64,000 nucleotides of DNA from Lytechinus pictus. Lineage: Eukaryota. Shown one piece after another: positions 1 to 61,949 of this stretch. The translations under genes and the position numbers were made by a program. Each line of letters starts with the position of its first letter. The first letter of the stretch is position 1. The stretch is taken from the NCBI RefSeq assembly GCF_037042905.1, contig NC_087254.1, forward strand, positions 11,842,001-11,906,000, read 5' to 3'. Below the pieces are notes generated by a model, which saw only the letters and a list, made by a program, of their open reading frames with translations, was not told where the DNA came from and searched no databases.

Positions 1-1113
1 TTCACCAAGCTTCTATTTGCATAACAAATTTGCTTTCATGCAATGGCAATGTTCCACTTATTTTGTACATCCCAATGTATATTAGAGTGAAAATAAAACA
101 TACCAACATTCCAAGGCCTTCACATCATTTTTAATAATAGAATTTTCCTTTCTTTTGGCGTGTGTTCTTGAAATTTGATTGATTGAACAATCTCTCGCAA
201 ATATTCATGTTTGCATGTCTTACTAAAGGACATGATTATCTATGTGTTTACATAATATTATACATGCCATCAAAGATTTAATATCAGGTCGACAAACTTT
301 CTAGAGGAAGAAGGGCAGGGTCCAATATCCCACACGGAAATATAGAAATGGGACCGAAGAAATGATCCCACTGAATCAGCTGTTCAACAAAGCACAGATG
401 TTCTTTTGTAGGCGGGGTTCAACCAAATTTTGTCTTCCCCGACTGAATCCAAATTCCTGCATGTTGACATTCTAAAAATATAACATTGTTTTCATGCCTG
501 AGTGTTCACCCTCTGATTCGAAAAACACATGGCTTTAGAAAGAATCTTTATGACATGAGCACAGGCATTGTTATCCTCGGGAAGAGCACACAATTGAAAA
601 ATGAATCTAAAAACATGTTTTGCACATCTGTGAATGTGACATTATTCTTTATATCAGAACACCTTACAAGGAGACGACAATAAGCCTCTTCACTCAGTAA
701 TAAAATATATAACAAATGCAAATAAATTAGTCCTGTCATAAATGTACATGTCTTTGTGCAATATCCCATGGACCTTGAGTTATTGGACAGTGATGGAATA
801 TTAATCATAAATAAAATCAAATCACCATAGAGGAAAAGATTAGATTAAACAAAGTTGTGACATATGAAAATACCATGAAAAAAGTCCCATGACTTCTTAT
901 ATGCATTGGCAAATCAATACACTTCATACATGACCAGGTAACTAAAAAATATTAATACACCTTGCGACCAAAAGATGAGTGTAAAAGAACCAAGTAGATT
1001 TCACCATGAGAGGGGAAAGAGCTGTTGCCAGGGGGATGTGATGGTGCCCTGGAAGTGCAATGATGAACCCATCCAAGGTCAGAGGTCATGGTGGGTCATG
1101 AAGAGGTCAAATG

Positions 1114-42407: not shown

Positions 42408-42519
42408 ATTAAGATTCTTATAATTTCTGAAGGTTTCCATGGCGAAGAAGAATAGTGTAGTAGGTTTCACGGTACACCATGTATTCTTTCTTGGGCATAT
42501 GTTGGTCCTGAAAAGGACC

Positions 42520-42573
42520 ACCCAATCTCGACGTTTCGACAAGTGTGTTCTTGTCGTCCTCAGGAGAATGAGC
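42520..42573 (-). ncRNA. Hammerhead ribozyme copy (minus arm, terminal)
   Basis: Reverse complement of the same motif. Confidence 0.9.
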
Positions 42574-42842
42574 AAAGTTTGTAAAAGCAGGCCTTATATA
42601 CTCTGTCGAAGTGCCGTATGCACGGTATCTCGCAGGGTACATGTCTCTGATTGGCTAGATAGGTCACATGACATCCACATATGCGGACGTGGGTGACAAC
42701 ACACAAATTGGGCGCGCAAAACCAGCGACGACCGGAAATTGCTGTCAGTTATCATTCCCGCTAGGATTAGCATTAATGACAAAAGTCACCACTTCCGCCC
42801 ATACACTGCAGTGCTCACACGTGTGTGGAACGTCCGGGTAGG

Positions 42843-45266
42843 CTAATTAGGCAAATTAGCCCCTTTGTCTAGAACGGTAAGCCAGATATTGCTGAGTTGG
42901 AGGCCGCTGTCTTGAGGAACAGTGTTATGTTCCTCAATCTCCAACGCTTCTCTGACTCTCCGTTGATACCAGTAGGGGACACGGGTGACTAGTCTACTCT
43001 CATCCCAAAGAATCCGGTGATCATGCGTATGGGCATGATCGATGATTGCAGACCTCTCCCTCTCGTCTCTCCTACCATGGGCCTTGTGTTCCTTAATCCG
43101 AGTGTTGAAGGAACGACCCGTCTCTCCGATGTAAACTTTACCGCATTCACAGGGAATTCGGTAAACTCCAGGGAGGTCCTTGGAGTTGCGCTTGTCCTTA
43201 TGTGTAGTGAGGGCAGATTGAAGCTTATTTGAGGAACTATGACGAACCTCAATGTCGGCTTCTCTCAAAATCCTCTGAATTTTGTGAGAGGCTGCTCCCA
43301 GATATGGAAGAACGACTCTCGCCTTGGGTTGTCCTGCACGAGGGTTCCGCGAGGGGGGAAGCTCAGTGCAGATCTTGTGTGAGGGGTAGTTGTTACATTT
43401 CAAAACACGTTTGATATGCTCAAGCTCACCTCTCAGGTGGATCTGGTCACTAACCTCATGCGCTCGTTTGACTAACGTCTTGTTGATGGATCTCAGCACT
43501 GATGGGTGGTGGAATGAACGATAGTTCAAGTACCGATCAGTGTGAGTAGGTTTCCGATAAACCTGATGGGATAGGGATCCCTGTGCCGTCCTCGTAATCT
43601 TTGTATCAAGAAAGGGGATAGACCCCTCATTCTCCATTTCCATGGTGAACTTGATACACTCGTGTTGAGAGTTGAGGTGCTGTAAGAAATTGCTAGTTTC
43701 CTCAGCACCGTGTTGCCAAACCACAAAAGTGTCGTCCACATATCTAAGCCACACTTTGGGTTTGTGGGTTGCTGACTGGAGAGCCGTCTCCTCGAAATGT
43801 TCCATGAACATGTTGGCTACCACTGGGGACAGGGGAGACCCCATGGCAGCCCCTTCCGTTTGCCTGTAGAATGTGTCTCTCCATCTGAAAGAGGTGGAAT
43901 TGAGGCACATCTCAAGCAGGTCATGGATCTCTAGAGGAGACAACTGTGTCCTGTCAGGGAGAGTTCTGTCAAATTTCAATCTCTCAAGGATGATGGCGCA
44001 AGCATCCTTAACTGGTACACTTGTGAACAATGACTCAACATCAAAGCTGATGAGGAGGTCATTGTTAGAGACGTTCATCTGACAGATCTGCTCAACGAAA
44101 TGTTTAGAGTTTCTCACGTGATGCACGCCCTGACCAACAAGAGGCTGTAAGATGTAAGTCAGATGCTGAGCCAGTGCGTACGTGGGAGATCCTCTAGTAG
44201 ACACAATAGGTCTGAGTGGAGTGTCTGGTTTATGAATCTTCGGTTGCCCAAAGATTATGGGACATAGACCAGACGAGCTCCGGAGTTGTCGGTAAATGGG
44301 TCTAGACAAGACATCCTTTCTCTGGAGAGAGAGGAGCTTATCATTAACCCTACGTTCGATGGCCGGCGTGGGGTCTCTAGGAAGTTTCCTATAGGTCCCC
44401 GAATCCAGTAATCTTTGAACCTTGGTCTCATAATCCAATCTGTCCATCACAACAGTAGCATTACCCTTGTCTGCCTTGAGAATATGAATGGAGTTATCCT
44501 CTCGGAGACTAGCAAGGCCTGACTTCTCGGCTTTGGTGAGGTTGGGCCGAGGTGGGTTAACCGAAGTCAGTACTTGTGAGATTTGGATACGCACTGTGTC
44601 TGATTGAGACCGAGTAAGATGTCTGAGGCTGGGTTCAATCTTCTGGATGAATTCTTTTCGGTTTACTTGCTTAGGAGCCATAGCAAAATTAAGTCCCAAT
44701 GAGAGGACCTGATGTTCATTCTCAGACAACTGACGTTGACTGAGGTTGACAACAGTTTTGCTAGGATGCAAGTTGTGTCTGGGCTGGCGGTTGTGTCTCG
44801 GCTGGCGGTTGTGTCTCGGCTGGTGTTTGTTGAAACGGGAAGGACGGATCAGTTTCTCAAACTTCCTCACTTGTTTGGACTTAGTTGTCTCAAAAACGAA
44901 GTGGCTGGAAGATTTGATGAAACGATCGATTTTACCCCAATCCTTGCTCGAGAGCTTTGACTTTAGGTATTCTTCCGATGTTTCAACAAAAGGTTGAAGT
45001 TGTCTGAGCTGGTTATGGACGTGTCTGATCCTCTCTCTGATGAGACTCTCAGAAGCATGTCTAAGAACCTGCTCCGCTCGTCTGGAACGGACAGGTGCAT
45101 GGAGCACCAATCCGCGGGGGATAACCCCTGAATCCCTGCACCTTTTGAGAAAGGTGAGATGGTTGACAAATCTGGCTTCCTTGATCCTGTTCCGCTGTAG
45201 TCTTCTGGTGTGCTGGAACGTCTGCTCCCCGTAGAGACGAATGATATAATTTCTGAAGGTTTCCAT
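42843..45266 (-). CDS. PLE reverse transcriptase + GIY-YIG endonuclease, intact (807 aa from gccATGg)
   Basis: ADKG motif, SFDVESLFT, GAAMGSPLSP, YVDD, and GVYRIPCECGKVYIGETGR..RIKEH. First in-frame ATG is in a strong Kozak context. Confidence 0.96.
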   Translation of the reverse strand: METFRNYIIRLYGEQTFQHTRRLQRNRIKEARFVNHLTFLKRCRDSGVIPRGLVLHAPVRSRRAEQVLRHASESLIRERIRHVHNQLRQLQPFVETSEEYLKSKLSSKDWGKIDRFIKSSSHFVFETTKSKQVRKFEKLIRPSRFNKHQPRHNRQPRHNRQPRHNLHPSKTVVNLSQRQLSENEHQVLSLGLNFAMAPKQVNRKEFIQKIEPSLRHLTRSQSDTVRIQISQVLTSVNPPRPNLTKAEKSGLASLREDNSIHILKADKGNATVVMDRLDYETKVQRLLDSGTYRKLPRDPTPAIERRVNDKLLSLQRKDVLSRPIYRQLRSSSGLCPIIFGQPKIHKPDTPLRPIVSTRGSPTYALAQHLTYILQPLVGQGVHHVRNSKHFVEQICQMNVSNNDLLISFDVESLFTSVPVKDACAIILERLKFDRTLPDRTQLSPLEIHDLLEMCLNSTSFRWRDTFYRQTEGAAMGSPLSPVVANMFMEHFEETALQSATHKPKVWLRYVDDTFVVWQHGAEETSNFLQHLNSQHECIKFTMEMENEGSIPFLDTKITRTAQGSLSHQVYRKPTHTDRYLNYRSFHHPSVLRSINKTLVKRAHEVSDQIHLRGELEHIKRVLKCNNYPSHKICTELPPSRNPRAGQPKARVVLPYLGAASHKIQRILREADIEVRHSSSNKLQSALTTHKDKRNSKDLPGVYRIPCECGKVYIGETGRSFNTRIKEHKAHGRRDERERSAIIDHAHTHDHRILWDESRLVTRVPYWYQRRVREALEIEEHNTVPQDSGLQLSNIWLTVLDKGANLPN

Positions 45267-45345
45267 GGCGAAGAAGAATAGTGTAGTAGGTTTCACGGTA
45301 CACCATGTATTCTTTCTTGGGCATATGTTGGTCCTGAAAAGGACC

Positions 45346-45399
45346 ACCCAATCTCGACGTTTCGACAAGTGTGTTCTTGTCGTCCTCAGGAGAATGAGC
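45346..45399 (-). ncRNA. Hammerhead ribozyme copy
   Basis: Reverse complement of the same motif. Confidence 0.9.
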
Positions 45400-45668
45400 A
45401 AAGTTTGTAAAAGCAGGCCTTATATACTCTGTCGAAGTGCCGTATGCACGGTATCTCGCAGGGTACATGTCTCTGATTGGCTAGATAGGTCACATGACAT
45501 CCACATATGCGGACGTGGGTGACAACACACAAATTGGGCGCGCAAAACCAGCGACGACCGGAAATTGCTGTCAGTTATCATTCCCGCTAGGATTAGCATT
45601 AATGACAAAAGTCACCACTTCCGCCCATACACTGCAGTGCTCACACGTGTGTGGAACGTCCGGGTAGG

Positions 45669-48092
45669 CTAATTAGGCAAATTAGCCCCTTTGTCTAGAA
45701 CGGTAAGCCAGATATTGCTGAGTTGGAGGCCGCTGTCTTGAGGAACAGTGTTATGTTCCTCAATCTCCAACGCTTCTCTGACTCTCCGTTGATACCAGTA
45801 GGGGACACGGGTGACTAGTCTACTCTCATCCCAAAGAATCCGGTGATCATGCGTATGGGCATGATCGATGATTGCAGACCTCTCCCTCTCGTCTCTCCTA
45901 CCATGGGCCTTGTGTTCCTTAATCCGAGTGTTGAAGGAACGACCCGTCTCTCCGATGTAAACTTTACCGCATTCACAGGGAATTCGGTAAACTCCAGGGA
46001 GGTCCTTGGAGTTGCGCTTGTCCTTATGTGTAGTGAGGGCAGATTGAAGCTTATTTGAGGAACTATGACGAACCTCAATGTCGGCTTCTCTCAAAATCCT
46101 CTGAATTTTGTGAGAGGCTGCTCCCAGATATGGAAGAACGACTCTCGCCTTGGGTTGTCCTGCACGAGGGTTCCGCGAGGGGGGAAGCTCAGTGCAGATC
46201 TTGTGTGAGGGGTAGTTGTTACATTTCAAAACACGTTTGATATGCTCAAGCTCACCTCTCAGGTGGATCTGGTCACTAACCTCATGCGCTCGTTTGACTA
46301 ACGTCTTGTTGATGGATCTCAGCACTGATGGGTGGTGGAATGAACGATAGTTCAAGTACCGATCAGTGTGAGTAGGTTTCCGATAAACCTGATGGGATAG
46401 GGATCCCTGTGCCGTCCTCGTAATCTTTGTATCAAGAAAGGGGATAGACCCCTCATTCTCCATTTCCATGGTGAACTTGATACACTCGTGTTGAGAGTTG
46501 AGGTGCTGTAAGAAATTGCTAGTTTCCTCAGCACCGTGTTGCCAAACCACAAAAGTGTCGTCCACATATCTAAGCCACACTTTGGGTTTGTGGGTTGCTG
46601 ACTGGAGAGCCGTCTCCTCGAAATGTTCCATGAACATGTTGGCTACCACTGGGGACAGGGGAGACCCCATGGCAGCCCCTTCCGTTTGCCTGTAGAATGT
46701 GTCTCTCCATCTGAAAGAGGTGGAATTGAGGCACATCTCAAGCAGGTCATGGATCTCTAGAGGAGACAACTGTGTCCTGTCAGGGAGAGTTCTGTCAAAT
46801 TTCAATCTCTCAAGGATGATGGCGCAAGCATCCTTAACTGGTACACTTGTGAACAATGACTCAACATCAAAGCTGATGAGGAGGTCATTGTTAGAGACGT
46901 TCATCTGACAGATCTGCTCAACGAAATGTTTAGAGTTTCTCACGTGATGCACGCCCTGACCAACAAGAGGCTGTAAGATGTAAGTCAGATGCTGAGCCAG
47001 TGCGTACGTGGGAGATCCTCTAGTAGACACAATAGGTCTGAGTGGAGTGTCTGGTTTATGAATCTTCGGTTGCCCAAAGATTATGGGACATAGACCAGAC
47101 GAGCTCCGGAGTTGTCGGTAAATGGGTCTAGACAAGACATCCTTTCTCTGGAGAGAGAGGAGCTTATCATTAACCCTACGTTCGATGGCCGGCGTGGGGT
47201 CTCTAGGAAGTTTCCTATAGGTCCCCGAATCCAGTAATCTTTGAACCTTGGTCTCATAATCCAATCTGTCCATCACAACAGTAGCATTACCCTTGTCTGC
47301 CTTGAGAATATGAATGGAGTTATCCTCTCGGAGACTAGCAAGGCCTGACTTCTCGGCTTTGGTGAGGTTGGGCCGAGGTGGGTTAACCGAAGTCAGTACT
47401 TGTGAGATTTGGATACGCACTGTGTCTGATTGAGACCGAGTAAGATGTCTGAGGCTGGGTTCAATCTTCTGGATGAATTCTTTTCGGTTTACTTGCTTAG
47501 GAGCCATAGCAAAATTAAGTCCCAATGAGAGGACCTGATGTTCATTCTCAGACAACTGACGTTGACTGAGGTTGACAACAGTTTTGCTAGGATGCAAGTT
47601 GTGTCTGGGCTGGCGGTTGTGTCTCGGCTGGCGGTTGTGTCTCGGCTGGTGTTTGTTGAAACGGGAAGGACGGATCAGTTTCTCAAACTTCCTCACTTGT
47701 TTGGACTTAGTTGTCTCAAAAACGAAGTGGCTGGAAGATTTGATGAAACGATCGATTTTACCCCAATCCTTGCTCGAGAGCTTTGACTTTAGGTATTCTT
47801 CCGATGTTTCAACAAAAGGTTGAAGTTGTCTGAGCTGGTTATGGACGTGTCTGATCCTCTCTCTGATGAGACTCTCAGAAGCATGTCTAAGAACCTGCTC
47901 CGCTCGTCTGGAACGGACAGGTGCATGGAGCACCAATCCGCGGGGGATAACCCCTGAATCCCTGCACCTTTTGAGAAAGGTGAGATGGTTGACAAATCTG
48001 GCTTCCTTGATCCTGTTCCGCTGTAGTCTTCTGGTGTGCTGGAACGTCTGCTCCCCGTAGAGACGAATGATATAATTTCTGAAGGTTTCCAT
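45669..48092 (-). CDS. PLE RT + GIY-YIG, intact copy
   Basis: Translation identical to the 42843 copy. Confidence 0.96.
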   Translation of the reverse strand: METFRNYIIRLYGEQTFQHTRRLQRNRIKEARFVNHLTFLKRCRDSGVIPRGLVLHAPVRSRRAEQVLRHASESLIRERIRHVHNQLRQLQPFVETSEEYLKSKLSSKDWGKIDRFIKSSSHFVFETTKSKQVRKFEKLIRPSRFNKHQPRHNRQPRHNRQPRHNLHPSKTVVNLSQRQLSENEHQVLSLGLNFAMAPKQVNRKEFIQKIEPSLRHLTRSQSDTVRIQISQVLTSVNPPRPNLTKAEKSGLASLREDNSIHILKADKGNATVVMDRLDYETKVQRLLDSGTYRKLPRDPTPAIERRVNDKLLSLQRKDVLSRPIYRQLRSSSGLCPIIFGQPKIHKPDTPLRPIVSTRGSPTYALAQHLTYILQPLVGQGVHHVRNSKHFVEQICQMNVSNNDLLISFDVESLFTSVPVKDACAIILERLKFDRTLPDRTQLSPLEIHDLLEMCLNSTSFRWRDTFYRQTEGAAMGSPLSPVVANMFMEHFEETALQSATHKPKVWLRYVDDTFVVWQHGAEETSNFLQHLNSQHECIKFTMEMENEGSIPFLDTKITRTAQGSLSHQVYRKPTHTDRYLNYRSFHHPSVLRSINKTLVKRAHEVSDQIHLRGELEHIKRVLKCNNYPSHKICTELPPSRNPRAGQPKARVVLPYLGAASHKIQRILREADIEVRHSSSNKLQSALTTHKDKRNSKDLPGVYRIPCECGKVYIGETGRSFNTRIKEHKAHGRRDERERSAIIDHAHTHDHRILWDESRLVTRVPYWYQRRVREALEIEEHNTVPQDSGLQLSNIWLTVLDKGANLPN

Positions 48093-48171
48093 GGCGAAGA
48101 AGAATAGTGTAGTAGGTTTCACGGTACACCATGTATTCTTTCTTGGGCATATGTTGGTCCTGAAAAGGACC

Positions 48172-48225
48172 ACCCAATCTCGACGTTTCGACAAGTGTGT
48201 TCTTGTCGTCCTCAGGAGAATGAGC
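48172..48225 (-). ncRNA. Hammerhead ribozyme copy
   Basis: Reverse complement of the same motif. Confidence 0.9.
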
Positions 48226-48494
48226 AAAGTTTGTAAAAGCAGGCCTTATATACTCTGTCGAAGTGCCGTATGCACGGTATCTCGCAGGGTACATGTCTCT
48301 GATTGGCTAGATAGGTCACATGACATCCACATATGCGGACGTGGGTGACAACACACAAATTGGGCGCGCAAAACCAGCGACGACCGGAAATTGCTGTCAG
48401 TTATCATTCCCGCTAGGATTAGCATTAATGACAAAAGTCACCACTTCCGCCCATACACTGCAGTGCTCACACGTGTGTGGAACGTCCGGGTAGG

Positions 48495-50918
48495 CTAATT
48501 AGGCAAATTAGCCCCTTTGTCTAGAACGGTAAGCCAGATATTGCTGAGTTGGAGGCCGCTGTCTTGAGGAACAGTGTTATGTTCCTCAATCTCCAACGCT
48601 TCTCTGACTCTCCGTTGATACCAGTAGGGGACACGGGTGACTAGTCTACTCTCATCCCAAAGAATCCGGTGATCATGCGTATGGGCATGATCGATGATTG
48701 CAGACCTCTCCCTCTCGTCTCTCCTACCATGGGCCTTGTGTTCCTTAATCCGAGTGTTGAAGGAACGACCCGTCTCTCCGATGTAAACTTTACCGCATTC
48801 ACAGGGAATTCGGTAAACTCCAGGGAGGTCCTTGGAGTTGCGCTTGTCCTTATGTGTAGTGAGGGCAGATTGAAGCTTATTTGAGGAACTATGACGAACC
48901 TCAATGTCGGCTTCTCTCAAAATCCTCTGAATTTTGTGAGAGGCTGCTCCCAGATATGGAAGAACGACTCTCGCCTTGGGTTGTCCTGCACGAGGGTTCC
49001 GCGAGGGGGGAAGCTCAGTGCAGATCTTGTGTGAGGGGTAGTTGTTACATTTCAAAACACGTTTGATATGCTCAAGCTCACCTCTCAGGTGGATCTGGTC
49101 ACTAACCTCATGCGCTCGTTTGACTAACGTCTTGTTGATGGATCTCAGCACTGATGGGTGGTGGAATGAACGATAGTTCAAGTACCGATCAGTGTGAGTA
49201 GGTTTCCGATAAACCTGATGGGATAGGGATCCCTGTGCCGTCCTCGTAATCTTTGTATCAAGAAAGGGGATAGACCCCTCATTCTCCATTTCCATGGTGA
49301 ACTTGATACACTCGTGTTGAGAGTTGAGGTGCTGTAAGAAATTGCTAGTTTCCTCAGCACCGTGTTGCCAAACCACAAAAGTGTCGTCCACATATCTAAG
49401 CCACACTTTGGGTTTGTGGGTTGCTGACTGGAGAGCCGTCTCCTCGAAATGTTCCATGAACATGTTGGCTACCACTGGGGACAGGGGAGACCCCATGGCA
49501 GCCCCTTCCGTTTGCCTGTAGAATGTGTCTCTCCATCTGAAAGAGGTGGAATTGAGGCACATCTCAAGCAGGTCATGGATCTCTAGAGGAGACAACTGTG
49601 TCCTGTCAGGGAGAGTTCTGTCAAATTTCAATCTCTCAAGGATGATGGCGCAAGCATCCTTAACTGGTACACTTGTGAACAATGACTCAACATCAAAGCT
49701 GATGAGGAGGTCATTGTTAGAGACGTTCATCTGACAGATCTGCTCAACGAAATGTTTAGAGTTTCTCACGTGATGCACGCCCTGACCAACAAGAGGCTGT
49801 AAGATGTAAGTCAGATGCTGAGCCAGTGCGTACGTGGGAGATCCTCTAGTAGACACAATAGGTCTGAGTGGAGTGTCTGGTTTATGAATCTTCGGTTGCC
49901 CAAAGATTATGGGACATAGACCAGACGAGCTCCGGAGTTGTCGGTAAATGGGTCTAGACAAGACATCCTTTCTCTGGAGAGAGAGGAGCTTATCATTAAC
50001 CCTACGTTCGATGGCCGGCGTGGGGTCTCTAGGAAGTTTCCTATAGGTCCCCGAATCCAGTAATCTTTGAACCTTGGTCTCATAATCCAATCTGTCCATC
50101 ACAACAGTAGCATTACCCTTGTCTGCCTTGAGAATATGAATGGAGTTATCCTCTCGGAGACTAGCAAGGCCTGACTTCTCGGCTTTGGTGAGGTTGGGCC
50201 GAGGTGGGTTAACCGAAGTCAGTACTTGTGAGATTTGGATACGCACTGTGTCTGATTGAGACCGAGTAAGATGTCTGAGGCTGGGTTCAATCTTCTGGAT
50301 GAATTCTTTTCGGTTTACTTGCTTAGGAGCCATAGCAAAATTAAGTCCCAATGAGAGGACCTGATGTTCATTCTCAGACAACTGACGTTGACTGAGGTTG
50401 ACAACAGTTTTGCTAGGATGCAAGTTGTGTCTGGGCTGGCGGTTGTGTCTCGGCTGGCGGTTGTGTCTCGGCTGGTGTTTGTTGAAACGGGAAGGACGGA
50501 TCAGTTTCTCAAACTTCCTCACTTGTTTGGACTTAGTTGTCTCAAAAACGAAGTGGCTGGAAGATTTGATGAAACGATCGATTTTACCCCAATCCTTGCT
50601 CGAGAGCTTTGACTTTAGGTATTCTTCCGATGTTTCAACAAAAGGTTGAAGTTGTCTGAGCTGGTTATGGACGTGTCTGATCCTCTCTCTGATGAGACTC
50701 TCAGAAGCATGTCTAAGAACCTGCTCCGCTCGTCTGGAACGGACAGGTGCATGGAGCACCAATCCGCGGGGGATAACCCCTGAATCCCTGCACCTTTTGA
50801 GAAAGGTGAGATGGTTGACAAATCTGGCTTCCTTGATCCTGTTCCGCTGTAGTCTTCTGGTGTGCTGGAACGTCTGCTCCCCGTAGAGACGAATGATATA
50901 ATTTCTGAAGGTTTCCAT
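48495..50918 (-). CDS. PLE RT + GIY-YIG, intact copy
   Basis: Translation identical to the 42843 copy. Confidence 0.96.
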   Translation of the reverse strand: METFRNYIIRLYGEQTFQHTRRLQRNRIKEARFVNHLTFLKRCRDSGVIPRGLVLHAPVRSRRAEQVLRHASESLIRERIRHVHNQLRQLQPFVETSEEYLKSKLSSKDWGKIDRFIKSSSHFVFETTKSKQVRKFEKLIRPSRFNKHQPRHNRQPRHNRQPRHNLHPSKTVVNLSQRQLSENEHQVLSLGLNFAMAPKQVNRKEFIQKIEPSLRHLTRSQSDTVRIQISQVLTSVNPPRPNLTKAEKSGLASLREDNSIHILKADKGNATVVMDRLDYETKVQRLLDSGTYRKLPRDPTPAIERRVNDKLLSLQRKDVLSRPIYRQLRSSSGLCPIIFGQPKIHKPDTPLRPIVSTRGSPTYALAQHLTYILQPLVGQGVHHVRNSKHFVEQICQMNVSNNDLLISFDVESLFTSVPVKDACAIILERLKFDRTLPDRTQLSPLEIHDLLEMCLNSTSFRWRDTFYRQTEGAAMGSPLSPVVANMFMEHFEETALQSATHKPKVWLRYVDDTFVVWQHGAEETSNFLQHLNSQHECIKFTMEMENEGSIPFLDTKITRTAQGSLSHQVYRKPTHTDRYLNYRSFHHPSVLRSINKTLVKRAHEVSDQIHLRGELEHIKRVLKCNNYPSHKICTELPPSRNPRAGQPKARVVLPYLGAASHKIQRILREADIEVRHSSSNKLQSALTTHKDKRNSKDLPGVYRIPCECGKVYIGETGRSFNTRIKEHKAHGRRDERERSAIIDHAHTHDHRILWDESRLVTRVPYWYQRRVREALEIEEHNTVPQDSGLQLSNIWLTVLDKGANLPN

Positions 50919-50997
50919 GGCGAAGAAGAATAGTGTAGTAGGTTTCACGGTACACCATGTATTCTTTCTTGGGCATATGTTGGTCCTGAAAAGGACC

Positions 50998-51051
50998 ACC
51001 CAATCTCGACGTTTCGACAAGTGTGTTCTTGTCGTCCTCAGGAGAATGAGC
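50998..51051 (-). ncRNA. Hammerhead ribozyme copy
   Basis: Reverse complement of the same motif. Confidence 0.9.
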
Positions 51052-51320
51052 AAAGTTTGTAAAAGCAGGCCTTATATACTCTGTCGAAGTGCCGTATGCA
51101 CGGTATCTCGCAGGGTACATGTCTCTGATTGGCTAGATAGGTCACATGACATCCACATATGCGGACGTGGGTGACAACACACAAATTGGGCGCGCAAAAC
51201 CAGCGACGACCGGAAATTGCTGTCAGTTATCATTCCCGCTAGGATTAGCATTAATGACAAAAGTCACCACTTCCGCCCATACACTGCAGTGCTCACACGT
51301 GTGTGGAACGTCCGGGTAGG

Positions 51321-53266: not shown

Positions 53267-53367
53267 TGTCGAAACGTCGAGATTGGGTGGTCCTTTTCAG
53301 GACCAACATATGCCCAAGAAAGAATACATGGTGTACCGTGAAACCTACTACACTATTCTTCTTCGCC

Positions 53368-55792
53368 ATGGAAACCTTCAGAAATTATATCATTCGTCTC
53401 TACGGGGAGCAGACGTTCCAGCACACCAGAAGACTACAGCGGAACAGGATCAAGGAAGCCAGATTTGTCAACCATCTCACCTTTCTCAAAAGGTGCAGGG
53501 ATTCAGGGGTTATCCCCCGCGGATTGGTGCTCCATGCACCTGTCCGTTCCAGACGAGCGGAGCAGGTTCTTAGACATGCTTCTGAGAGTCTCATCAGAGA
53601 GAGGATCAGACACGTCCATAACCAGCTCAGACAACTTCAACCTTTTGTTGAAACATCGGAAGAATACCTAAAGTCAAAGCTCTCGAGCAAGGATTGGGGT
53701 AAAATCGATCGTTTCATCAAATCTTCCAGCCACTTCGTTTTTGAGACAACTAAGTCCAAACAAGTGAGGAAGTTTGAGAAACTGATCCGTCCTTCCCGTT
53801 TCAACAAACACCAGCCGAGACACAACCGCCAGCCGAGACACAACCGCCAGCCCAGACACAACTTGCATCCTAGCAAAACTGTTGTCAACCTCAGTCAACG
53901 TCAGTTGTCTGAGAATGAACATCAGGTCCTCTCATTGGGACTTAATTTTGCTATGGCTCCTAAGCAAGTAAACCGAAAAAGAATTCATCCAGAAGATTGA
54001 ACCCAGCCTCAGACATCTTACTCGGTCTCAATCAGACACAGTGCGTATCCAAATCTCACAAGTACTGACTTCGGTTAACCCACCTCGGCCCAACCTCACC
54101 AAAGCCGAGAAGTCAGGCCTTGCTAGTCTCCGAGAGGATAACTCCATTCATATTCTCAAGGCAGACAAGGGTAATGCTACTGTTGTGATGGACAGATTGG
54201 ATTATGAGACCAAGGTTCAAAGATTACTGGATTCGGGGACCTATAGGAAACTTCCTAGAGACCCCACGCCGGCCATCGAACGTAGGGTTAATGATAAGCT
54301 CCTCTCTCTCCAGAGAAAGGATGTCTTGTCTAGACCCATTTACCGACAACTCCGGAGCTCGTCTGGTCTATGTCCCATAATCTTTGGGCAACCGAAGATT
54401 CATAAACCAGACACTCCACTCAGACCTATTGTGTCTACTAGAGGATCTCCCACGTACGCACTGGCTCAGCATCTGACTTACATCTTACAGCCTCTTGTTG
54501 GTCAGGGCGTGCATCACATGAGAAACTCTAAACATTTCGTTGAGCAGATCTGTCAGATGAACGTCTCTAACAATGACCTCCTCATCAGCTTTGATGTTGA
54601 GTCATTGTTCACAAGTGTACCAGTTAAGGATGCTTGCGCCATCATCCTTGAGAGATTGAAATTTGACAGAACTCTCCCTGACAGGACACAGTTGTCTCCT
54701 CTAGAGATCCATGACCTGCTTGAGATGTGCCTCAATTCCACCTCTTTCAGATGGAGAGACACATTCTACAGGCAAACGGAAGGGGCTGCCATGGGGTCTC
54801 CCCTGTCCCCAGTGGTAGCCAACATGTTCATGGAACATTTCGAGGAGACGGCTCTCCAGTCAGCAACCCACAAACCCAAAGTGTGGCTTAGATATGTGGA
54901 CGACACTTTTGTGGTTTGGCAACACGGTGCTGAGGAAACTAGCAATTTCTTACAGCACCTCAACTCTCAACACGAGTGTATCAAGTTCACCATGGAAATG
55001 GAGAATGAGGGGTCTATCCCCTTTCTTGATACAAAGATTACGAGGACGGCACAGGGATCCCTATCCCATCAGGTTTATCGGAAACCTACTCACACTGATC
55101 GGTACTTGAACTATCGTTCATTCCACCACCCATCAGTGCTGAGATCCATCAACAAGACGTTAGTCAAACGAGCGCATGAGGTTAGTGACCAGATCCACCT
55201 GAGAGGTGAGCTTGAGCATATCAAACGTGTTTTGAAATGTAACAACTACCCCTCACACAAGATCTGCACTGAGCTTCCCCCCTCGCGGAACCCTCGTGCA
55301 GGACAACCCAAGGCGAGAGTCGTTCTTCCATATCTGGGAGCAGCCTCTCACAAAATTCAGAGGATTTTGAGAGAAGCCGACATTGAGGTTCGTCATAGTT
55401 CCTCAAATAAGCTTCAATCTGCCCTCACTACACATAAGGACAAGCGCAACTCCAAGGACCTCCCTGGAGTTTACCGAATTCCCTGTGAATGCGGTAAAGT
55501 TTACATCGGAGAGACGGGTCGTTCCTTCAACACTCGGATTAAGGAACACAAGGCCCATGGTAGGAGAGACGAGAGGGAGAGGTCTGCAATCATCGATCAT
55601 GCCCATACGCATGATCACCGGATTCTTTGGGATGAGAGTAGACTAGTCACCCGTGTCCCCTACTGGTATCAACGGAGAGTCAGAGAAGCGTTGGAGATTG
55701 AGGAACATAACACTGTTCCTCAAGACAGCGGCCTCCAACTCAGCAATATCTGGCTTACCGTTCTAGACAAAGGGGCTAATTTGCCTAATTAG
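53368..55792 (+). pseudogene. PLE RT + GIY-YIG copy with +1 frameshift
   Basis: CGAAAAAG (5 A) at about 53976-53980 versus CGAAAAG in the other copies splits the ORF into 258 aa and 583 aa. Also a V>M change (CACATG vs CACGTG) near 54518. The extra A could be a homopolymer consensus error. Confidence 0.8.
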
Positions 55793-55829
55793 CCTACCCG
55801 GACGTTCCACACACGTGTGAGCACTGCAG

Positions 55830-56069
55830 TGTATGGGCGGAAGTGGTGACTTTTGTCATTAATGCTAATCCTAGCGGGAATGATAACTGACAGCAATTTC
55901 CGGTCGTCGCTGGTTTTGCGCGCCCAATTTGTGTGTTGTCACCCACGTCCGCATATGTGGATGTCATGTGACCTATCTAGCCAATCAGAGACATGTACCC
56001 TGCGAGATACCGTGCATACGGCACTTCGACAGAGTATATAAGGCCTGCTTTTACAAACTTTGCTCATTC
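55830..56069 (+). promoter_or_regulatory. Putative Pol II promoter in the PLE pseudo-LTR (repeated at every unit boundary)
   Basis: GGGCGGAAGT (GC/ETS-like) near 55835, CCAAT at 55981, TATATAAG at 56035, and Inr-like TCATTC whose A (56066) lies 31 nt after the TATA start. Confidence 0.7.
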
Positions 56070-56115
56070 TCCTGAGGACGACAAGAACACACTTGTCGAA
56101 ACGTCGAGATTGGGT
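56062..56115 (+). ncRNA. Minimal type I hammerhead ribozyme (PLE-type); predicted cleavage after 56105
   Basis: GCTCAT-TCTC (stem I), CTGAGGA core, one extra C, GACAAG-aacaca-CTTGTC (stem II), GAAA, CG, TC^, then GAGA-T-TGGGT (stem I partner). Stem III is reduced to the palindrome ACGT. Confidence 0.9.
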
Positions 56116-56194
56116 GGTCCTTTTCAGGACCAACATATGCCCAAGAAAGAATACATGGTGTACCGTGAAACCTACTACACTATTCTTCTTCGCC

Positions 56195-58600
56195 ATGGAA
56201 ACCTTCAGAAATTATATCATTCGTCTCTACGGGGAGCAGACGTTCCAGCACACCAGAAGACTACAGCGGAACAGGATCAAGGAAGCCAGATTTGTCAACC
56301 ATCTCACCTTTCTCAAAAGGTGCAGGGATTCAGGGGTTATCCCCCGCGGATTGGTGCTCCATGCACCTGTCCGTTCCAGACGAGCGGAGCAGGTTCTTAG
56401 ACATGCTTCTGAGAGTCTCATCAGAGAGAGGATCAGACACGTCCATAACCAGCTCAGACAACTTCAACCTTTTGTTGAAACATCGGAAGAATACCTAAAG
56501 TCAAAGCTCTCGAGCAAGGATTGGGGTAAAATCGATCGTTTCATCAAATCTTCCAGCCACTTCGTTTTTGAGACAACTAAGTCCAAACAAGTGAGGAAGT
56601 TTGAGAAACTGATCCGTCCTTCCCGTTTCAACAAACACCAGCCGAGACACAACCGCCAGCCCAGACACAACTTGCATCCTAGCAAAACTGTTGTCAACCT
56701 CAGTCAACGTCAGTTGTCTGAGAATGAACATCAGGTCCTCTCATTGGGACTTAATTTTGCTATGGCTCCTAAGCAAGTAAACCGAAAAGAATTCATCCAG
56801 AAGATTGAACCCAGCCTCAGACATCTTACTCGGTCTCAATCAGACACAGTGCGTATCCAAATCTCACAAGTACTGACTTCGGTTAACCCACCTCGGCCCA
56901 ACCTCACCAAAGCCGAGAAGTCAGGCCTTGCTAGTCTCCGAGAGGATAACTCCATTCATATTCTCAAGGCAGACAAGGGTAATGCTACTGTTGTGATGGA
57001 CAGATTGGATTATGAGACCAAGGTTCAAAGATTACTGGATTCGGGGACCTATAGGAAACTTCCTAGAGACCCCACGCCGGCCATCGAACGTAGGGTTAAT
57101 GATAAGCTCCTCTCTCTCCAGAGAAAGGATGTCTTGTCTAGACCCATTTACCGACAACTCCGGAGCTCGTCTGGTCTATGTCCCATAATCTTTGGGCAAC
57201 CGAAGATTCATAAACCAGACACTCCACTCAGACCTATTGTGTCTACTAGAGGATCTCCCACGTACGCACTGGCTCAGCATCTGACTTACATCTTACAGCC
57301 TCTTGTTGGTCAGGGCGTGCATCACGTGAGAAACTCTAAACATTTCGTTGAGCAGATCTGTCAGATGAACGTCTCTAACAATGACCTCCTCATCAGCTTT
57401 GATGTTGAGTCATTGTTCACAAGTGTACCAGTTAAGGATGCTTGCGCCATCATCCTTGAGAGATTGAAATTTGACAGAACTCTCCCTGACAGGACACAGT
57501 TGTCTCCTCTAGAGATCCATGACCTGCTTGAGATGTGCCTCAATTCCACCTCTTTCAGATGGAGAGACACATTCTACAGGCAAACGGAAGGGGCTGCCAT
57601 GGGGTCTCCCCTGTCCCCAGTGGTAGCCAACATGTTCATGGAACATTTCGAGGAGACGGCTCTCCAGTCAGCAACCCACAAACCCAAAGTGTGGCTTAGA
57701 TATGTGGACGACACTTTTGTGGTTTGGCAACACGGTGCTGAGGAAACTAGCAATTTCTTACAGCACCTCAACTCTCAACACGAGTGTATCAAGTTCACCA
57801 TGGAAATGGAGAATGAGGGGTCTATCCCCTTTCTTGATACAAAGATTACGAGGACGGCACAGGGATCCCTATCCCATCAGGTTTATCGGAAACCTACTCA
57901 CACTGATCGGTACTTGAACTATCGTTCATTCCACCACCCATCAGTGCTGAGATCCATCAACAAGACGTTAGTCAAACGAGCGCATGAGGTTAGTGACCAG
58001 ATCCACCTGAGAGGTGAGCTTGAGCATATCAAACGTGTTTTGAAATGTAACAACTACCCCTCACACAAGATCTGCACTGAGCTTCCCCCCTCGCGGAACC
58101 CTCGTGCAGGACAACCCAAGGCGAGAGTCGTTCTTCCATATCTGGGAGCAGCCTCTCACAAAATTCAGAGGATTTTGAGAGAAGCCGACATTGAGGTTCG
58201 TCATAGTTCCTCAAATAAGCTTCAATCTGCCCTCACTACACATAAGGACAAGCGCAACTCCAAGGACCTCCCTGGAGTTTACCGAATTCCCTGTGAATGC
58301 GGTAAAGTTTACATCGGAGAGACGGGTCGTTCCTTCAACACTCGGATTAAGGAACACAAGGCCCATGGTAGGAGAGACGAGAGGGAGAGGTCTGCAATCA
58401 TCGATCATGCCCATACGCATGATCACCGGATTCTTTGGGATGAGAGTAGACTAGTCACCCGTGTCCCCTACTGGTATCAACGGAGAGTCAGAGAAGCGTT
58501 GGAGATTGAGGAACATAACACTGTTCCTCAAGACAGCGGCCTCCAACTCAGCAATATCTGGCTTACCGTTCTAGACAAAGGGGCTAATTTGCCTAATTAG
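56195..58600 (+). CDS. PLE RT + GIY-YIG, intact, lacking one 18-bp repeat (801 aa)
   Basis: Same protein with two rather than three QPRHN units. Confidence 0.95.
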   Translation: METFRNYIIRLYGEQTFQHTRRLQRNRIKEARFVNHLTFLKRCRDSGVIPRGLVLHAPVRSRRAEQVLRHASESLIRERIRHVHNQLRQLQPFVETSEEYLKSKLSSKDWGKIDRFIKSSSHFVFETTKSKQVRKFEKLIRPSRFNKHQPRHNRQPRHNLHPSKTVVNLSQRQLSENEHQVLSLGLNFAMAPKQVNRKEFIQKIEPSLRHLTRSQSDTVRIQISQVLTSVNPPRPNLTKAEKSGLASLREDNSIHILKADKGNATVVMDRLDYETKVQRLLDSGTYRKLPRDPTPAIERRVNDKLLSLQRKDVLSRPIYRQLRSSSGLCPIIFGQPKIHKPDTPLRPIVSTRGSPTYALAQHLTYILQPLVGQGVHHVRNSKHFVEQICQMNVSNNDLLISFDVESLFTSVPVKDACAIILERLKFDRTLPDRTQLSPLEIHDLLEMCLNSTSFRWRDTFYRQTEGAAMGSPLSPVVANMFMEHFEETALQSATHKPKVWLRYVDDTFVVWQHGAEETSNFLQHLNSQHECIKFTMEMENEGSIPFLDTKITRTAQGSLSHQVYRKPTHTDRYLNYRSFHHPSVLRSINKTLVKRAHEVSDQIHLRGELEHIKRVLKCNNYPSHKICTELPPSRNPRAGQPKARVVLPYLGAASHKIQRILREADIEVRHSSSNKLQSALTTHKDKRNSKDLPGVYRIPCECGKVYIGETGRSFNTRIKEHKAHGRRDERERSAIIDHAHTHDHRILWDESRLVTRVPYWYQRRVREALEIEEHNTVPQDSGLQLSNIWLTVLDKGANLPN

Positions 58601-58869
58601 CCTACCCGGACGTTCCACACACGTGTGAGCACTGCAGTGTATGGGCGGAAGTGGTGACTTTTGTCATTAATGCTAATCCTAGCGGGAATGATAACTGACA
58701 GCAATTTCCGGTCGTCGCTGGTTTTGCGCGCCCAATTTGTGTGTTGTCACCCACGTCCGCATATGTGGATGTCATGTGACCTATCTAGCCAATCAGAGAC
58801 ATGTACCCTGCGAGATACCGTGCATACGGCACTTCGACAGAGTATATAAGGCCTGCTTTTACAAACTTT

Positions 58870-58923
58870 GCTCATTCTCCTGAGGACGACAAGAACACAC
58901 TTGTCGAAACGTCGAGATTGGGT
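58870..58923 (+). ncRNA. Hammerhead ribozyme copy; cleavage after 58913
   Basis: Identical motif. Confidence 0.9.
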
Positions 58924-59002
58924 GGTCCTTTTCAGGACCAACATATGCCCAAGAAAGAATACATGGTGTACCGTGAAACCTACTACACTATTCTTCTTCG
59001 CC

Positions 59003-61426
59003 ATGGAAACCTTCAGAAATTATATCATTCGTCTCTACGGGGAGCAGACGTTCCAGCACACCAGAAGACTACAGCGGAACAGGATCAAGGAAGCCAGATT
59101 TGTCAACCATCTCACCTTTCTCAAAAGGTGCAGGGATTCAGGGGTTATCCCCCGCGGATTGGTGCTCCATGCACCTGTCCGTTCCAGACGAGCGGAGCAG
59201 GTTCTTAGACATGCTTCTGAGAGTCTCATCAGAGAGAGGATCAGACACGTCCATAACCAGCTCAGACAACTTCAACCTTTTGTTGAAACATCGGAAGAAT
59301 ACCTAAAGTCAAAGCTCTCGAGCAAGGATTGGGGTAAAATCGATCGTTTCATCAAATCTTCCAGCCACTTCGTTTTTGAGACAACTAAGTCCAAACAAGT
59401 GAGGAAGTTTGAGAAACTGATCCGTCCTTCCCGTTTCAACAAACACCAGCCGAGACACAACCGCCAGCCGAGACACAACCGCCAGCCCAGACACAACTTG
59501 CATCCTAGCAAAACTGTTGTCAACCTCAGTCAACGTCAGTTGTCTGAGAATGAACATCAGGTCCTCTCATTGGGACTTAATTTTGCTATGGCTCCTAAGC
59601 AAGTAAACCGAAAAGAATTCATCCAGAAGATTGAACCCAGCCTCAGACATCTTACTCGGTCTCAATCAGACACAGTGCGTATCCAAATCTCACAAGTACT
59701 GACTTCGGTTAACCCACCTCGGCCCAACCTCACCAAAGCCGAGAAGTCAGGCCTTGCTAGTCTCCGAGAGGATAACTCCATTCATATTCTCAAGGCAGAC
59801 AAGGGTAATGCTACTGTTGTGATGGACAGATTGGATTATGAGACCAAGGTTCAAAGATTACTGGATTCGGGGACCTATAGGAAACTTCCTAGAGACCCCA
59901 CGCCGGCCATCGAACGTAGGGTTAATGATAAGCTCCTCTCTCTCCAGAGAAAGGATGTCTTGTCTAGACCCATTTACCGACAACTCCGGAGCTCGTCTGG
60001 TCTATGTCCCATAATCTTTGGGCAACCGAAGATTCATAAACCAGACACTCCACTCAGACCTATTGTGTCTACTAGAGGATCTCCCACGTACGCACTGGCT
60101 CAGCATCTGACTTACATCTTACAGCCTCTTGTTGGTCAGGGCGTGCATCACGTGAGAAACTCTAAACATTTCGTTGAGCAGATCTGTCAGATGAACGTCT
60201 CTAACAATGACCTCCTCATCAGCTTTGATGTTGAGTCATTGTTCACAAGTGTACCAGTTAAGGATGCTTGCGCCATCATCCTTGAGAGATTGAAATTTGA
60301 CAGAACTCTCCCTGACAGGACACAGTTGTCTCCTCTAGAGATCCATGACCTGCTTGAGATGTGCCTCAATTCCACCTCTTTCAGATGGAGAGACACATTC
60401 TACAGGCAAACGGAAGGGGCTGCCATGGGGTCTCCCCTGTCCCCAGTGGTAGCCAACATGTTCATGGAACATTTCGAGGAGACGGCTCTCCAGTCAGCAA
60501 CCCACAAACCCAAAGTGTGGCTTAGATATGTGGACGACACTTTTGTGGTTTGGCAACACGGTGCTGAGGAAACTAGCAATTTCTTACAGCACCTCAACTC
60601 TCAACACGAGTGTATCAAGTTCACCATGGAAATGGAGAATGAGGGGTCTATCCCCTTTCTTGATACAAAGATTACGAGGACGGCACAGGGATCCCTATCC
60701 CATCAGGTTTATCGGAAACCTACTCACACTGATCGGTACTTGAACTATCGTTCATTCCACCACCCATCAGTGCTGAGATCCATCAACAAGACGTTAGTCA
60801 AACGAGCGCATGAGGTTAGTGACCAGATCCACCTGAGAGGTGAGCTTGAGCATATCAAACGTGTTTTGAAATGTAACAACTACCCCTCACACAAGATCTG
60901 CACTGAGCTTCCCCCCTCGCGGAACCCTCGTGCAGGACAACCCAAGGCGAGAGTCGTTCTTCCATATCTGGGAGCAGCCTCTCACAAAATTCAGAGGATT
61001 TTGAGAGAAGCCGACATTGAGGTTCGTCATAGTTCCTCAAATAAGCTTCAATCTGCCCTCACTACACATAAGGACAAGCGCAACTCCAAGGACCTCCCTG
61101 GAGTTTACCGAATTCCCTGTGAATGCGGTAAAGTTTACATCGGAGAGACGGGTCGTTCCTTCAACACTCGGATTAAGGAACACAAGGCCCATGGTAGGAG
61201 AGACGAGAGGGAGAGGTCTGCAATCATCGATCATGCCCATACGCATGATCACCGGATTCTTTGGGATGAGAGTAGACTAGTCACCCGTGTCCCCTACTGG
61301 TATCAACGGAGAGTCAGAGAAGCGTTGGAGATTGAGGAACATAACACTGTTCCTCAAGACAGCGGCCTCCAACTCAGCAATATCTGGCTTACCGTTCTAG
61401 ACAAAGGGGCTAATTTGCCTAATTAG
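59003..61426 (+). CDS. PLE RT + GIY-YIG, intact copy
   Basis: Translation identical to the minus-arm copies. Confidence 0.96.
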   Translation: METFRNYIIRLYGEQTFQHTRRLQRNRIKEARFVNHLTFLKRCRDSGVIPRGLVLHAPVRSRRAEQVLRHASESLIRERIRHVHNQLRQLQPFVETSEEYLKSKLSSKDWGKIDRFIKSSSHFVFETTKSKQVRKFEKLIRPSRFNKHQPRHNRQPRHNRQPRHNLHPSKTVVNLSQRQLSENEHQVLSLGLNFAMAPKQVNRKEFIQKIEPSLRHLTRSQSDTVRIQISQVLTSVNPPRPNLTKAEKSGLASLREDNSIHILKADKGNATVVMDRLDYETKVQRLLDSGTYRKLPRDPTPAIERRVNDKLLSLQRKDVLSRPIYRQLRSSSGLCPIIFGQPKIHKPDTPLRPIVSTRGSPTYALAQHLTYILQPLVGQGVHHVRNSKHFVEQICQMNVSNNDLLISFDVESLFTSVPVKDACAIILERLKFDRTLPDRTQLSPLEIHDLLEMCLNSTSFRWRDTFYRQTEGAAMGSPLSPVVANMFMEHFEETALQSATHKPKVWLRYVDDTFVVWQHGAEETSNFLQHLNSQHECIKFTMEMENEGSIPFLDTKITRTAQGSLSHQVYRKPTHTDRYLNYRSFHHPSVLRSINKTLVKRAHEVSDQIHLRGELEHIKRVLKCNNYPSHKICTELPPSRNPRAGQPKARVVLPYLGAASHKIQRILREADIEVRHSSSNKLQSALTTHKDKRNSKDLPGVYRIPCECGKVYIGETGRSFNTRIKEHKAHGRRDERERSAIIDHAHTHDHRILWDESRLVTRVPYWYQRRVREALEIEEHNTVPQDSGLQLSNIWLTVLDKGANLPN

Positions 61427-61695
61427 CCTACCCGGACGTTCCACACACGTGTGAGCACTGCAGTGTATGGGCGGAAGTGGTGACTTTTGTCATTAATGCT
61501 AATCCTAGCGGGAATGATAACTGACAGCAATTTCCGGTCGTCGCTGGTTTTGCGCGCCCAATTTGTGTGTTGTCACCCACGTCCGCATATGTGGATGTCA
61601 TGTGACCTATCTAGCCAATCAGAGACATGTACCCTGCGAGATACCGTGCATACGGCACTTCGACAGAGTATATAAGGCCTGCTTTTACAAACTTT

Positions 61696-61749
61696 GCTCA
61701 TTCTCCTGAGGACGACAAGAACACACTTGTCGAAACGTCGAGATTGGGT
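61696..61749 (+). ncRNA. Hammerhead ribozyme copy; cleavage after 61739
   Basis: Identical motif. Confidence 0.9.
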
Positions 61750-61949
61750 GGTCCTTTTCAGGACCAACATATGCCCAAGAAAGAATACATGGTGTACCGT
61801 GAAACCTACTACACTATTAAGATTCTTGCAGAATTGAGGTCTTATTGATGTTGATATGTGGTGATATTTTGATGATTATTGAATATGAACTTTCTGAGAT
61901 TTGCTGTCCACAAGAAATGGAGGAAATAAAAATAAGAAATAAAAATAAA

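Follow-up and report, generated by a model that had tools for sequence, protein, structure and literature searches.

Genomic insertions of Penelope-like elements (PLEs) typically consist of tandem copies accompanied by an inverted arm and a single tail (Craig et al., PMC8557442 Fig. 2), and how insertions come to exceed one unit has been debated for some twenty years without an answer. In vitro, purified PLE protein cleaves and extends both DNA strands (Frangieh et al. 2024, PMC11167929), and reverse transcription begins at two internal RNA start sites that lie 30-40 nt apart and bracket the tail (PMC11167929). The working model of that study is an mRNA with several copies of the element, derived from a repetitive locus (PMC11167929). 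Circular RNAs, cut by the hammerhead ribozyme (HHR) of the element and then ligated, were proposed in 2014 as reverse-transcription templates of more than unit length that would explain PLE tandems (Cervera and de la Peña, PMC4209133); a 2019 review restates this proposal (PMC6765202), and the role of the PLE hammerhead is still called a mystery (PMC7761336). Here we describe a PLE array of the sea urchin Lytechinus pictus, located in a stretch of 64,000 nt (RefSeq assembly GCF_037042905.1, contig NC_087254.1, positions 11,842,001 to 11,906,000 of the forward strand). This whole stretch is called the window, and all positions given below are window positions unless another locus is named.

The element is of a known kind and the array has a known architecture; only its copy number is unusual. 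Two described elements, PAc of Anolis carolinensis and Penelope of Drosophila virilis, share with it a promoter and a minimal type I HHR in a pseudo-long terminal repeat (pLTR), copies arranged head to tail together with an inverted arm, a 34-nt tail confined to one end, two reverse-transcription start sites near the start of the open reading frame (ORF), and an AT-rich, ATT-containing target that is duplicated upon insertion. Whereas canonical PLE insertions usually have one to two partial units, the array has 3.84 plus 3.03 full-length units within one target-site duplication (TSD). The locus does not answer the question of how PLE insertions exceed one unit. It is an unusually clean natural product: a single TSD encloses about seven almost identical units, some of them with intact ORFs, and both ends coincide with defined start sites. 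It lies in the genome of a laboratory sea urchin, in which direct tests are feasible.

A seven-unit array within one target-site duplication

The 12-bp sequence ATTAAGATTCTT is present as an exact match at two places in the 64-kb window, positions 42408-42419 and 61816-61827, which correspond to the left and right edges of the array. A BLAST search with one unit against the window revealed that the 19,396 bp between these two TSD copies consist solely of copies of one 2826-bp unit, that the 2826-bp period is exact across the array, and that there are no further copies of the unit elsewhere in the 64 kb. The GC content of the array (46-49%) differs from that of its flanks (27-35%). In total there are about 6.9 units, 3.84 in minus sense and 3.03 in plus sense, which are arranged head to head, so that both outer ends of the array are 3' ends of the element. 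A previous reading of the window, made from the sequence only, had claimed a 12-bp TSD around a 19.4-kb array with an exact 2826-bp period and about 3.8 minus and 3 plus units, and all these features were recovered. The same reading had described the array as two-armed. The two arms are indeed present, but their arrangement required correction: their 5' ends meet at 53266/53267 and their 3' ends are at the flanks.

In the following, unit positions are numbered along the sense strand, with +1 being the first base 3' of the predicted HHR cleavage site (window position 58914). The left arm (42420-53266, minus strand; 3.84 units, 10,847 bp) is 100% identical to the reference unit throughout. From the centre outwards, it contains a partial unit (unit positions 568-2826, at 53266-51008) whose 5' end is at the array centre, three full units (51007-48182, 48181-45356 and 45355-42530), and a terminal stretch from +1 to +110/111 (42529-42420/42419) at the flank. 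Its last 34 nt (42420-42453) form a tail, and this 3' end matches the tail-type ends of two other L. pictus insertions, L004/L005 and L013. The right arm (53267-61815, plus strand; 3.03 units, 8,549 bp) runs from unit position 2815 at the centre to +76 at the flank and has no tail. It starts with a 12-nt fragment (unit positions 2815-2826, at 53267-53278), followed by a first full unit (53279-56105) with an extra A in an A4 run at 53976, which causes a frameshift, and a CpG G-to-A transition at 54518, a second unit (56106-58913) that has one copy fewer of an 18-bp repeat, in frame, and a perfect third unit (58914-61739). The outer end at +76 corresponds to 61815, and the match extends to +79 through an ATT that the element has in common with the TSD. 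This no-tail end is of the same type as those of L001, L002, L007 and L012. At the centre junction (53266/53267) the 5' ends of the two arms are joined bluntly, with neither filler nor microhomology; on the right-arm side the sequence begins 12 nt upstream of an HHR cleavage site, and on the left-arm side it begins inside the block of 18-bp repeats.

Across the 19.4 kb, the units differ at three places only: a homopolymer indel, a CpG transition and a repeat slippage. Each difference is private to one unit, and all three are located in the right arm, a distribution that is not significant given the lengths of the arms (p ~0.09, hand estimate). The copy number and the 100% identity are only as reliable as the single assembly GCA_037042905.1 from which they come, for which literature searches yielded no sequencing technology. 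A run of Ns (37462-37892) is present about 5 kb upstream of the array.

On its predicted content, the unit is a complete PLE of L. pictus. In sense orientation it contains TATATAA, an initiator (Inr)-like TCATTC, a minimal type I HHR, an 89-nt leader and an ATG-initiated ORF of 807 codons. The promoter (58843-58877, plus strand, and likewise in every unit) is predicted from sequence, with TATATAA at 58843-58849 and the A of the Inr-like TCATTC at 58874, 31 nt downstream. Seven copies of the ORF are present, of which four are intact. Three of these, identical to one another, are located on the minus strand (42843-45266, 45669-48092 and 48495-50918), and the fourth on the plus strand (59003-61426). 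Of the other three, the minus-strand copy at 51321-53266 is cut by the centre junction and is without the first 478 nt of the coding sequence; the plus-strand copy at 53368-55792 carries the frameshift due to the extra A at 53976 as well as the G-to-A change at 54518; and that at 56195-58600 is in frame and encodes 801 amino acids, with one QPRHNR repeat fewer (deletion near 56637/56638, its exact place within the repeats being ambiguous). The earlier claim of essentially identical translations is corrected accordingly. The repeat concerned (59446-59497, plus strand; 18 bp, 2.9 copies) encodes three QPRHNR motifs inside the ORF of every unit and is not present in the Anolis homologue.

The 807-aa protein contains a reverse transcriptase (RT) domain (aa 344-534; Pfam RVT_1, 45 bits) with a YVDD motif and, in its last 127 aa, near the C-terminus, a GIY-YIG endonuclease domain (Pfam, 25.3 bits against a cut-off of 22.6), whose GVYRIPC..YIGET motif aligns with the Anolis PLE protein. 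The Anolis carolinensis PLE protein is the closest named comparison (39% identity, end to end), and homologues show the same set of RVT_1, DUF8422 and HTH_animal domains. The nearest database protein is an L. pictus fragment with 97% identity. The exact 807-aa product had no match in the protein collection or in the searched assemblies of sequencing runs, and the 801-aa product is called in the public assembly; it maps to chromosome CM073235.1 of L. pictus GCA_037042905.1 at about 11.9 Mb, adjoining a RabGAP-TBC gene. RT, GIY-YIG endonuclease, pLTR, tail and HHR motif together confirm the earlier assignment to the PLEs. Because there are four intact ORFs with RT and GIY-YIG domains, a predicted promoter and a conserved HHR, the element looks competent, and it is apparently an autonomous, active PLE of the Penelope/Poseidon type.

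Reverse-transcription start sites and other copies of the family

The array was compared with six other L. pictus loci (97-99.5% identity), a relative in S. purpuratus and two metagenome contigs, a small and biased sample that was reached only via annotated proteins. Four L. pictus copies have a single arm: L001 (unit position 878 to +77), L002 (1004 to +76), L007 (1703 to +79) and L012 (+1 to +77, with an internal deletion). Two have two arms: L004/L005, a head-to-head pair (1005 to +111..114 and 1187 to +77), and L013 (2781 to +113 and 1230 to +78). The S. purpuratus copy, L011, is also two-armed, has a 10-bp TSD, and combines a 322-bp inverted no-tail arm with a pLTR-ORF-pLTR arm that ends 27 nt into the ORF. 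An older copy, L003 (unit positions 162-2780), is without the 3' terminal part and was excluded from the counts. None of the nine other arms at the six other L. pictus loci is longer than one unit plus 77 nt.

The two-armed layout of the array is not a special signature. It is the standard PLE architecture of tandem copies, inverted arm and one tail (PMC8557442, PMC11167929), in which pLTRs result from complete or partial tandem copies in head-to-tail order, often accompanied by an inverted 5'-truncated copy, and it recurs at L004/L005, L013 and L011.

The 3' ends of ten arms at seven L. pictus sites, including the array, fall in one short region of the unit (58960-59023, plus strand), which contains a conserved ACATGGTGTACCG..AAAC motif, also kept in L008 (a related family, 67% identical in protein), L010 and L011, followed by two start sites. 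The no-tail start is at +76 (58989) and the tail start at +110 (59023); the 34-nt tail thus corresponds to 58990-59023 and contains the ATG of the ORF at 59003. The outer ends of the array (+76 and +110) are the two standard 3' ends of the family, to which the nine other arms also conform, and the S. purpuratus relative uses them too. In each of the four two-armed insertions (the array, L004/L005, L013 and L011), one arm ends with the tail (+110 to +113) and the other without it (+76 to +79), and the four single-armed copies L001, L002, L007 and L012 all end at the no-tail site. The presence of just one tail in 4/4 two-armed insertions suggests that each DNA strand uses a different one of the two start sites. 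No sampled copy has a scar where it crosses the ribozyme site.

The shorter arm of L013, which is inverted (L013:9526-9684; unit position 2781 to +113, 159 nt), begins 6 nt before the predicted Inr A, as would a cDNA that had run off the 5' end of a primary transcript; reverse transcription could in that case begin at the 5'-proximal copy of the start site. The metagenome scaffold L010 (TARA, 3131 bp), a PLE contig of unit length, has identical first and last 55 nt and a unit of 3076 bp; identical ends of this kind are the assembler signature of a tandem or circular source. Many further homologues are found on contigs of 2.4-3.3 kb.

The targets at the flanks of the array, L002, L004, L011, L012 and L013 are AT-rich and often contain ATT or ATTCT (TSD sequences: ATTAAGATTCTT, TACAATATTCT, AAATATTCTGT, ATCTCATATT and GATTATATATA), and ATTCTT is also found directly after the no-tail start site within the element. 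Such AT-rich, ATT-containing targets agree with the ATT preference reported in vitro.

The hammerhead ribozyme and a putative histone-type signal in the leader

According to a published description (PMC4209133), the core of PLE HHRs is complete, helix II is long and preceded by an unpaired base, and helix III is essentially missing. The HHR of the array, which was located by pattern in this minimal form without helix III and then examined by covariation, agrees with that description: it is a minimal type I HHR with CUGAGGA, an unpaired C, a 6-bp helix II and GAAAC-GUC (58870-58923, plus strand; predicted cleavage after 58913). Rfam did not report an HHR at the gathering score in the whole window, nor at E values up to 10 in one and a third units. 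The HHR begins at the predicted transcription start site of the unit. It is present in seven complete copies, three on the plus strand (predicted cleavage after 56105, 58913 and 61739) and four on the minus strand (51008/51007, 48182/48181, 45356/45355 and 42530/42529), and an eighth copy is truncated (53267-53278). Across four families, the core is invariant save for one change in the TARA contig, and three of the six pairs of helix II are compensatory, with both sides changed. In that contig (L010) the core reads CGGAUGA instead of CUGAUGA, and the stem-loop described below is lost. The predicted fold of the monomer contains helices I and II, and folding as a dimer showed no clear energy preference (-43.2 against 2 x -20.7 kcal/mol).

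Two insertions, one in L. pictus (L012:9376, same family) and one in the related family (L008:45), start exactly at +1; in L012, 19 nt of filler separate the TSD from +1. The chance of two +1 starts among about ten arms is estimated at ~6e-6. These two independent insertions are indirect evidence of PLE hammerhead cleavage in vivo, which would determine where template RNAs have their 5' end.

Like the non-LTR (animal) retrozymes, which according to a 2026 preprint derive from PLE pLTRs, the element has one type I HHR per unit and forms exact head-to-tail genomic arrays, and for both a route through circles and rolling-circle copying has been proposed. However, retrozymes are non-coding and a few hundred nt long, whereas the array unit has 2826 nt and encodes its own RT and endonuclease, and retrozymes give circular RNAs, whereas the element of the array is known here from DNA sequence alone. 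The HHR also differs in position from that of PAc: it lies wholly within the 5' leader and 89 nt ahead of the ATG, while the PAc HHR overlaps the start codon.

A further difference is that the leader contains a histone-type stem-loop and spacer element, which have not been described for PLEs in the searchable literature; nor did we find there a report of histone stem-loops in retrotransposons. In every unit, 11 nt past the HHR cleavage site, the stem-loop GGUCCUUUUCAGGACC (58924-58939, plus strand) is followed by CAAGAAAGA (58950-58958). Further plus-strand copies of the pair are located at 53289-53323, 56116-56150 and 61750-61784, and minus-strand copies are present in the left arm. The stem-loop matches the Rfam family Histone3 below threshold (16.9 bits, gathering score 34; E = 0.7 over all families). 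We take the 9-mer CAAGAAAGA to be the histone spacer element of sea urchins known from work of the Birnstiel laboratory, which pairs with U7 small nuclear RNA. It is an exact match, 10 nt past the stem, in each unit of the array as well as in the two L008 copies; outside the array it occurs only twice in about 45 kb of the window, both strands counted. Stem-loop and CAAGAAAGA are both kept in L008 (2790-2821 and 62-93), and the stem-loop is kept in S. purpuratus L011 (9838-9853).

These sequences are placed in a PLE leader and not at the 3' end of a histone mRNA. Neither AATAAA nor ATTAAA is present on the sense strand of the 2826-nt unit, where about 1.7 would be expected by chance (estimate), which leaves the histone-type signal as the sole 3'-end signal that can be recognised. 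The end of the reverse-transcription template is not determined by this signal, because all genomic 3' ends lie 3' of it, at +76 or +110. The signal might define a separate, translated RNA form, and its conservation raises the possibility that the element borrows the histone mRNA pathway. The +1 insertions and this leader signal may be more useful than the array itself.

Origin of the array and further features of the window

The simplest origin of the array is a single recent insertion, as the sequence-only reading had also proposed. The evidence for a single event is that the exact 12-bp TSD is present only at the edges and that both outer ends are 3' ends at canonical start sites; the three differences between units are all private. 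We consider it rather probable that this event involved both DNA strands and copied a template longer than one unit. The GIY-YIG endonuclease would nick the AT-rich target at positions 12 bp apart, and both freed 3'-OH ends would prime reverse transcription, one at the no-tail site +76 and the other at the tail site +110. The two cDNAs would extend inward, over 8.5 and 10.8 kb, on a template exceeding one unit, and one cDNA end would then switch onto the other, closing the centre with a blunt-ended join. Two-strand priming is inferred here from the in vitro data on the Anolis PLE. We also infer that the multi-unit length arose during insertion, because both arms exceed three units while no other sampled arm does, and because no variant is common to several units. 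As both arms exceed three units and the nine other arms reach at most one unit plus 77 nt, the cause is expected to have acted on both arms together. Provided that the copy number is genuine and dates from the insertion, cDNAs of >8 kb were made from both strands, with three to four scarless passes over the ribozyme site.

The array resembles the products of L1 twin priming in that both strands of a staggered break prime, the arms are inverted, the 3' ends are at the flanks, the 5' ends are joined internally, and there is one TSD. In L1 twin priming, however, the second cDNA is primed at a random internal site of the same RNA, which yields an inversion or deletion within less than one element, whereas both arms of the array start from fixed sites and comprise several units each, 6.9 units in total. 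A link between PLEs and twin priming was not found in the literature.

Several points weigh against a multi-unit insertion. That the insertion already contained the extra units when it formed is not proved by the sequence, and unequal exchange readily takes place between perfect tandem repeats of 2.8 kb. A single assembly underlies both the copy number and the 100% identity, and true differences may be lost when repeats are polished; the other loci form a small and biased sample. Neither a master locus of at least four units nor a circular RNA was seen. Finally, we know of no PLE reverse transcriptase that has been shown to make cDNAs of 8-11 kb.

As to the template of such a multi-unit insertion, we tentatively regard a linear read-through RNA from an existing tandem locus as possible; read-through is plausible because the sense strand of the unit has neither AATAAA nor ATTAAA. 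Repeated homology-guided transfers between unit-length RNAs are very unlikely. Simple template jumping with untemplated bases is not favoured, as about 17 boundary crossings are scarless. The third kind of template is the one put forward in the sequence-only reading, in which HHR-cut RNA would be ligated to a 2826-nt circle and the RT would run three to four laps on it for each DNA strand; we hold it to be unlikely. The HHR is intact in every complete unit, with its invariant core and covarying helix II, and probably cuts in vivo, given that L012 and L008 start exactly at the predicted site. The start sites of reverse transcription lie only 76-110 nt past the cleavage site, all sampled copies cross that site without a scar, which requires it to be uncut or religated, and the arbitrary 5' ends of both arms are expected on an endless template, which would make a multi-unit master locus unnecessary. 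In addition, circular RNAs have been reported for the HHR retrozymes of animals, whose presumed source is PLE pLTRs. However, circular PLE RNA has not been reported, PLE HHRs cleave poorly in vitro (PMC4209133), and Anolis HHR mutants still inserted normally, with unprocessed RNA being the main substrate and no reads ending at the HHR site (PMC11167929). The defined 5' ends of other copies (L012 and L008 at +1, L013 near the predicted transcription start site) indicate linear templates, and a linear multimer predicts every feature of the array equally well. The exact period and the scarless joins, which had been taken to favour a circle, do not do so, because a read-through multimer, homology-guided template transfer and unequal exchange predict the same, and the array alone cannot show a circular RNA template; where the same family does bear on the question, through L012 and L013, it points away from the circle that had been proposed. 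The idea is not new either, since it had been proposed before for PLE tandems (PMC4209133, PMC6765202), and the term viroid-like replication was an overreach, as copying a circle into DNA is not RNA-to-RNA replication. If rolling-circle copying were nevertheless true, the array would be the first trace in a genome of a protein-coding element that retrotransposes by rolling-circle copying of a circular RNA.

The extra units may also have come after the insertion. An ordinary insertion of about one to two units per arm could have grown by unequal sister-chromatid exchange or replication slippage: tandem repeats this large and identical recombine readily, a first duplication followed by unequal crossover is the accepted model of satellite growth, and as all three differences belong to fast mutation classes, some time since the insertion may have passed. 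Yet this would require independent growth past three units in both arms, a right arm starting at 1.03 units would have had only 88 bp repeated, and the units have no variant in common, unlike recent duplications of a mutated unit, which makes later expansion quite unlikely. That the units were over-expanded or misjoined by the assembler, the true locus being a standard PLE insertion of one to two units, seems to us very unlikely. PLE tandem and inverted structures are known to trouble assembly (PMC8557442), the locus is in one assembly only, with a gap of Ns 5 kb upstream, and a homopolymer indel is a typical long-read consensus error; but assemblers usually collapse identical repeats rather than expand them, two distinct unique flanks have a common TSD, and at least three different units of the right arm are supported, because the frameshifted unit is not the one with the 18-bp deletion. 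A fold-back read chimera was rejected, because the flanks differ and share the TSD. Highly improbable, finally, is serial homing, in which the element would have inserted into its own tail region several times over in separate events. According to reviews, PLEs have a tendency to insert into or beside existing copies (PMC6765202), the Drosophila endonuclease recognises the tail of its own element, and the 3' half of the TSD (ATTCTT) resembles +77 to +82 of the element. However, all eight unit-boundary crossings are identical and free of internal TSDs, filler and truncation, whereas L012, the sole sampled copy with its 5' junction read against the TSD, has 19 nt of filler, and eight precise events in two orientations are not parsimonious.

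Some other features of the window lie outside the array. A 758-aa ORF (22698-24974, plus strand) encodes a SCAN domain (retroviral capsid-like), a zinc knuckle and an integrase zinc-binding domain; a protease, an RT or an integrase core was not detected in it. It is located in a stretch of strong G-over-C skew and may be a truncated or domesticated gene of the Ty3/gypsy type. Immediately adjacent to the left TSD (42381-42407, plus strand), two overlapping TGACGTCA palindromes (CRE/ATF-type) are present within ATGACGTCATGATGACGTCATGAC, and these may be a promoter element or part of another repeat. A minisatellite of about seven copies of 81-94 bp is located at 11268-12151, and an (ATAG)n microsatellite of about 100 copies at 40326-40770, 1.6 kb upstream of the insertion.

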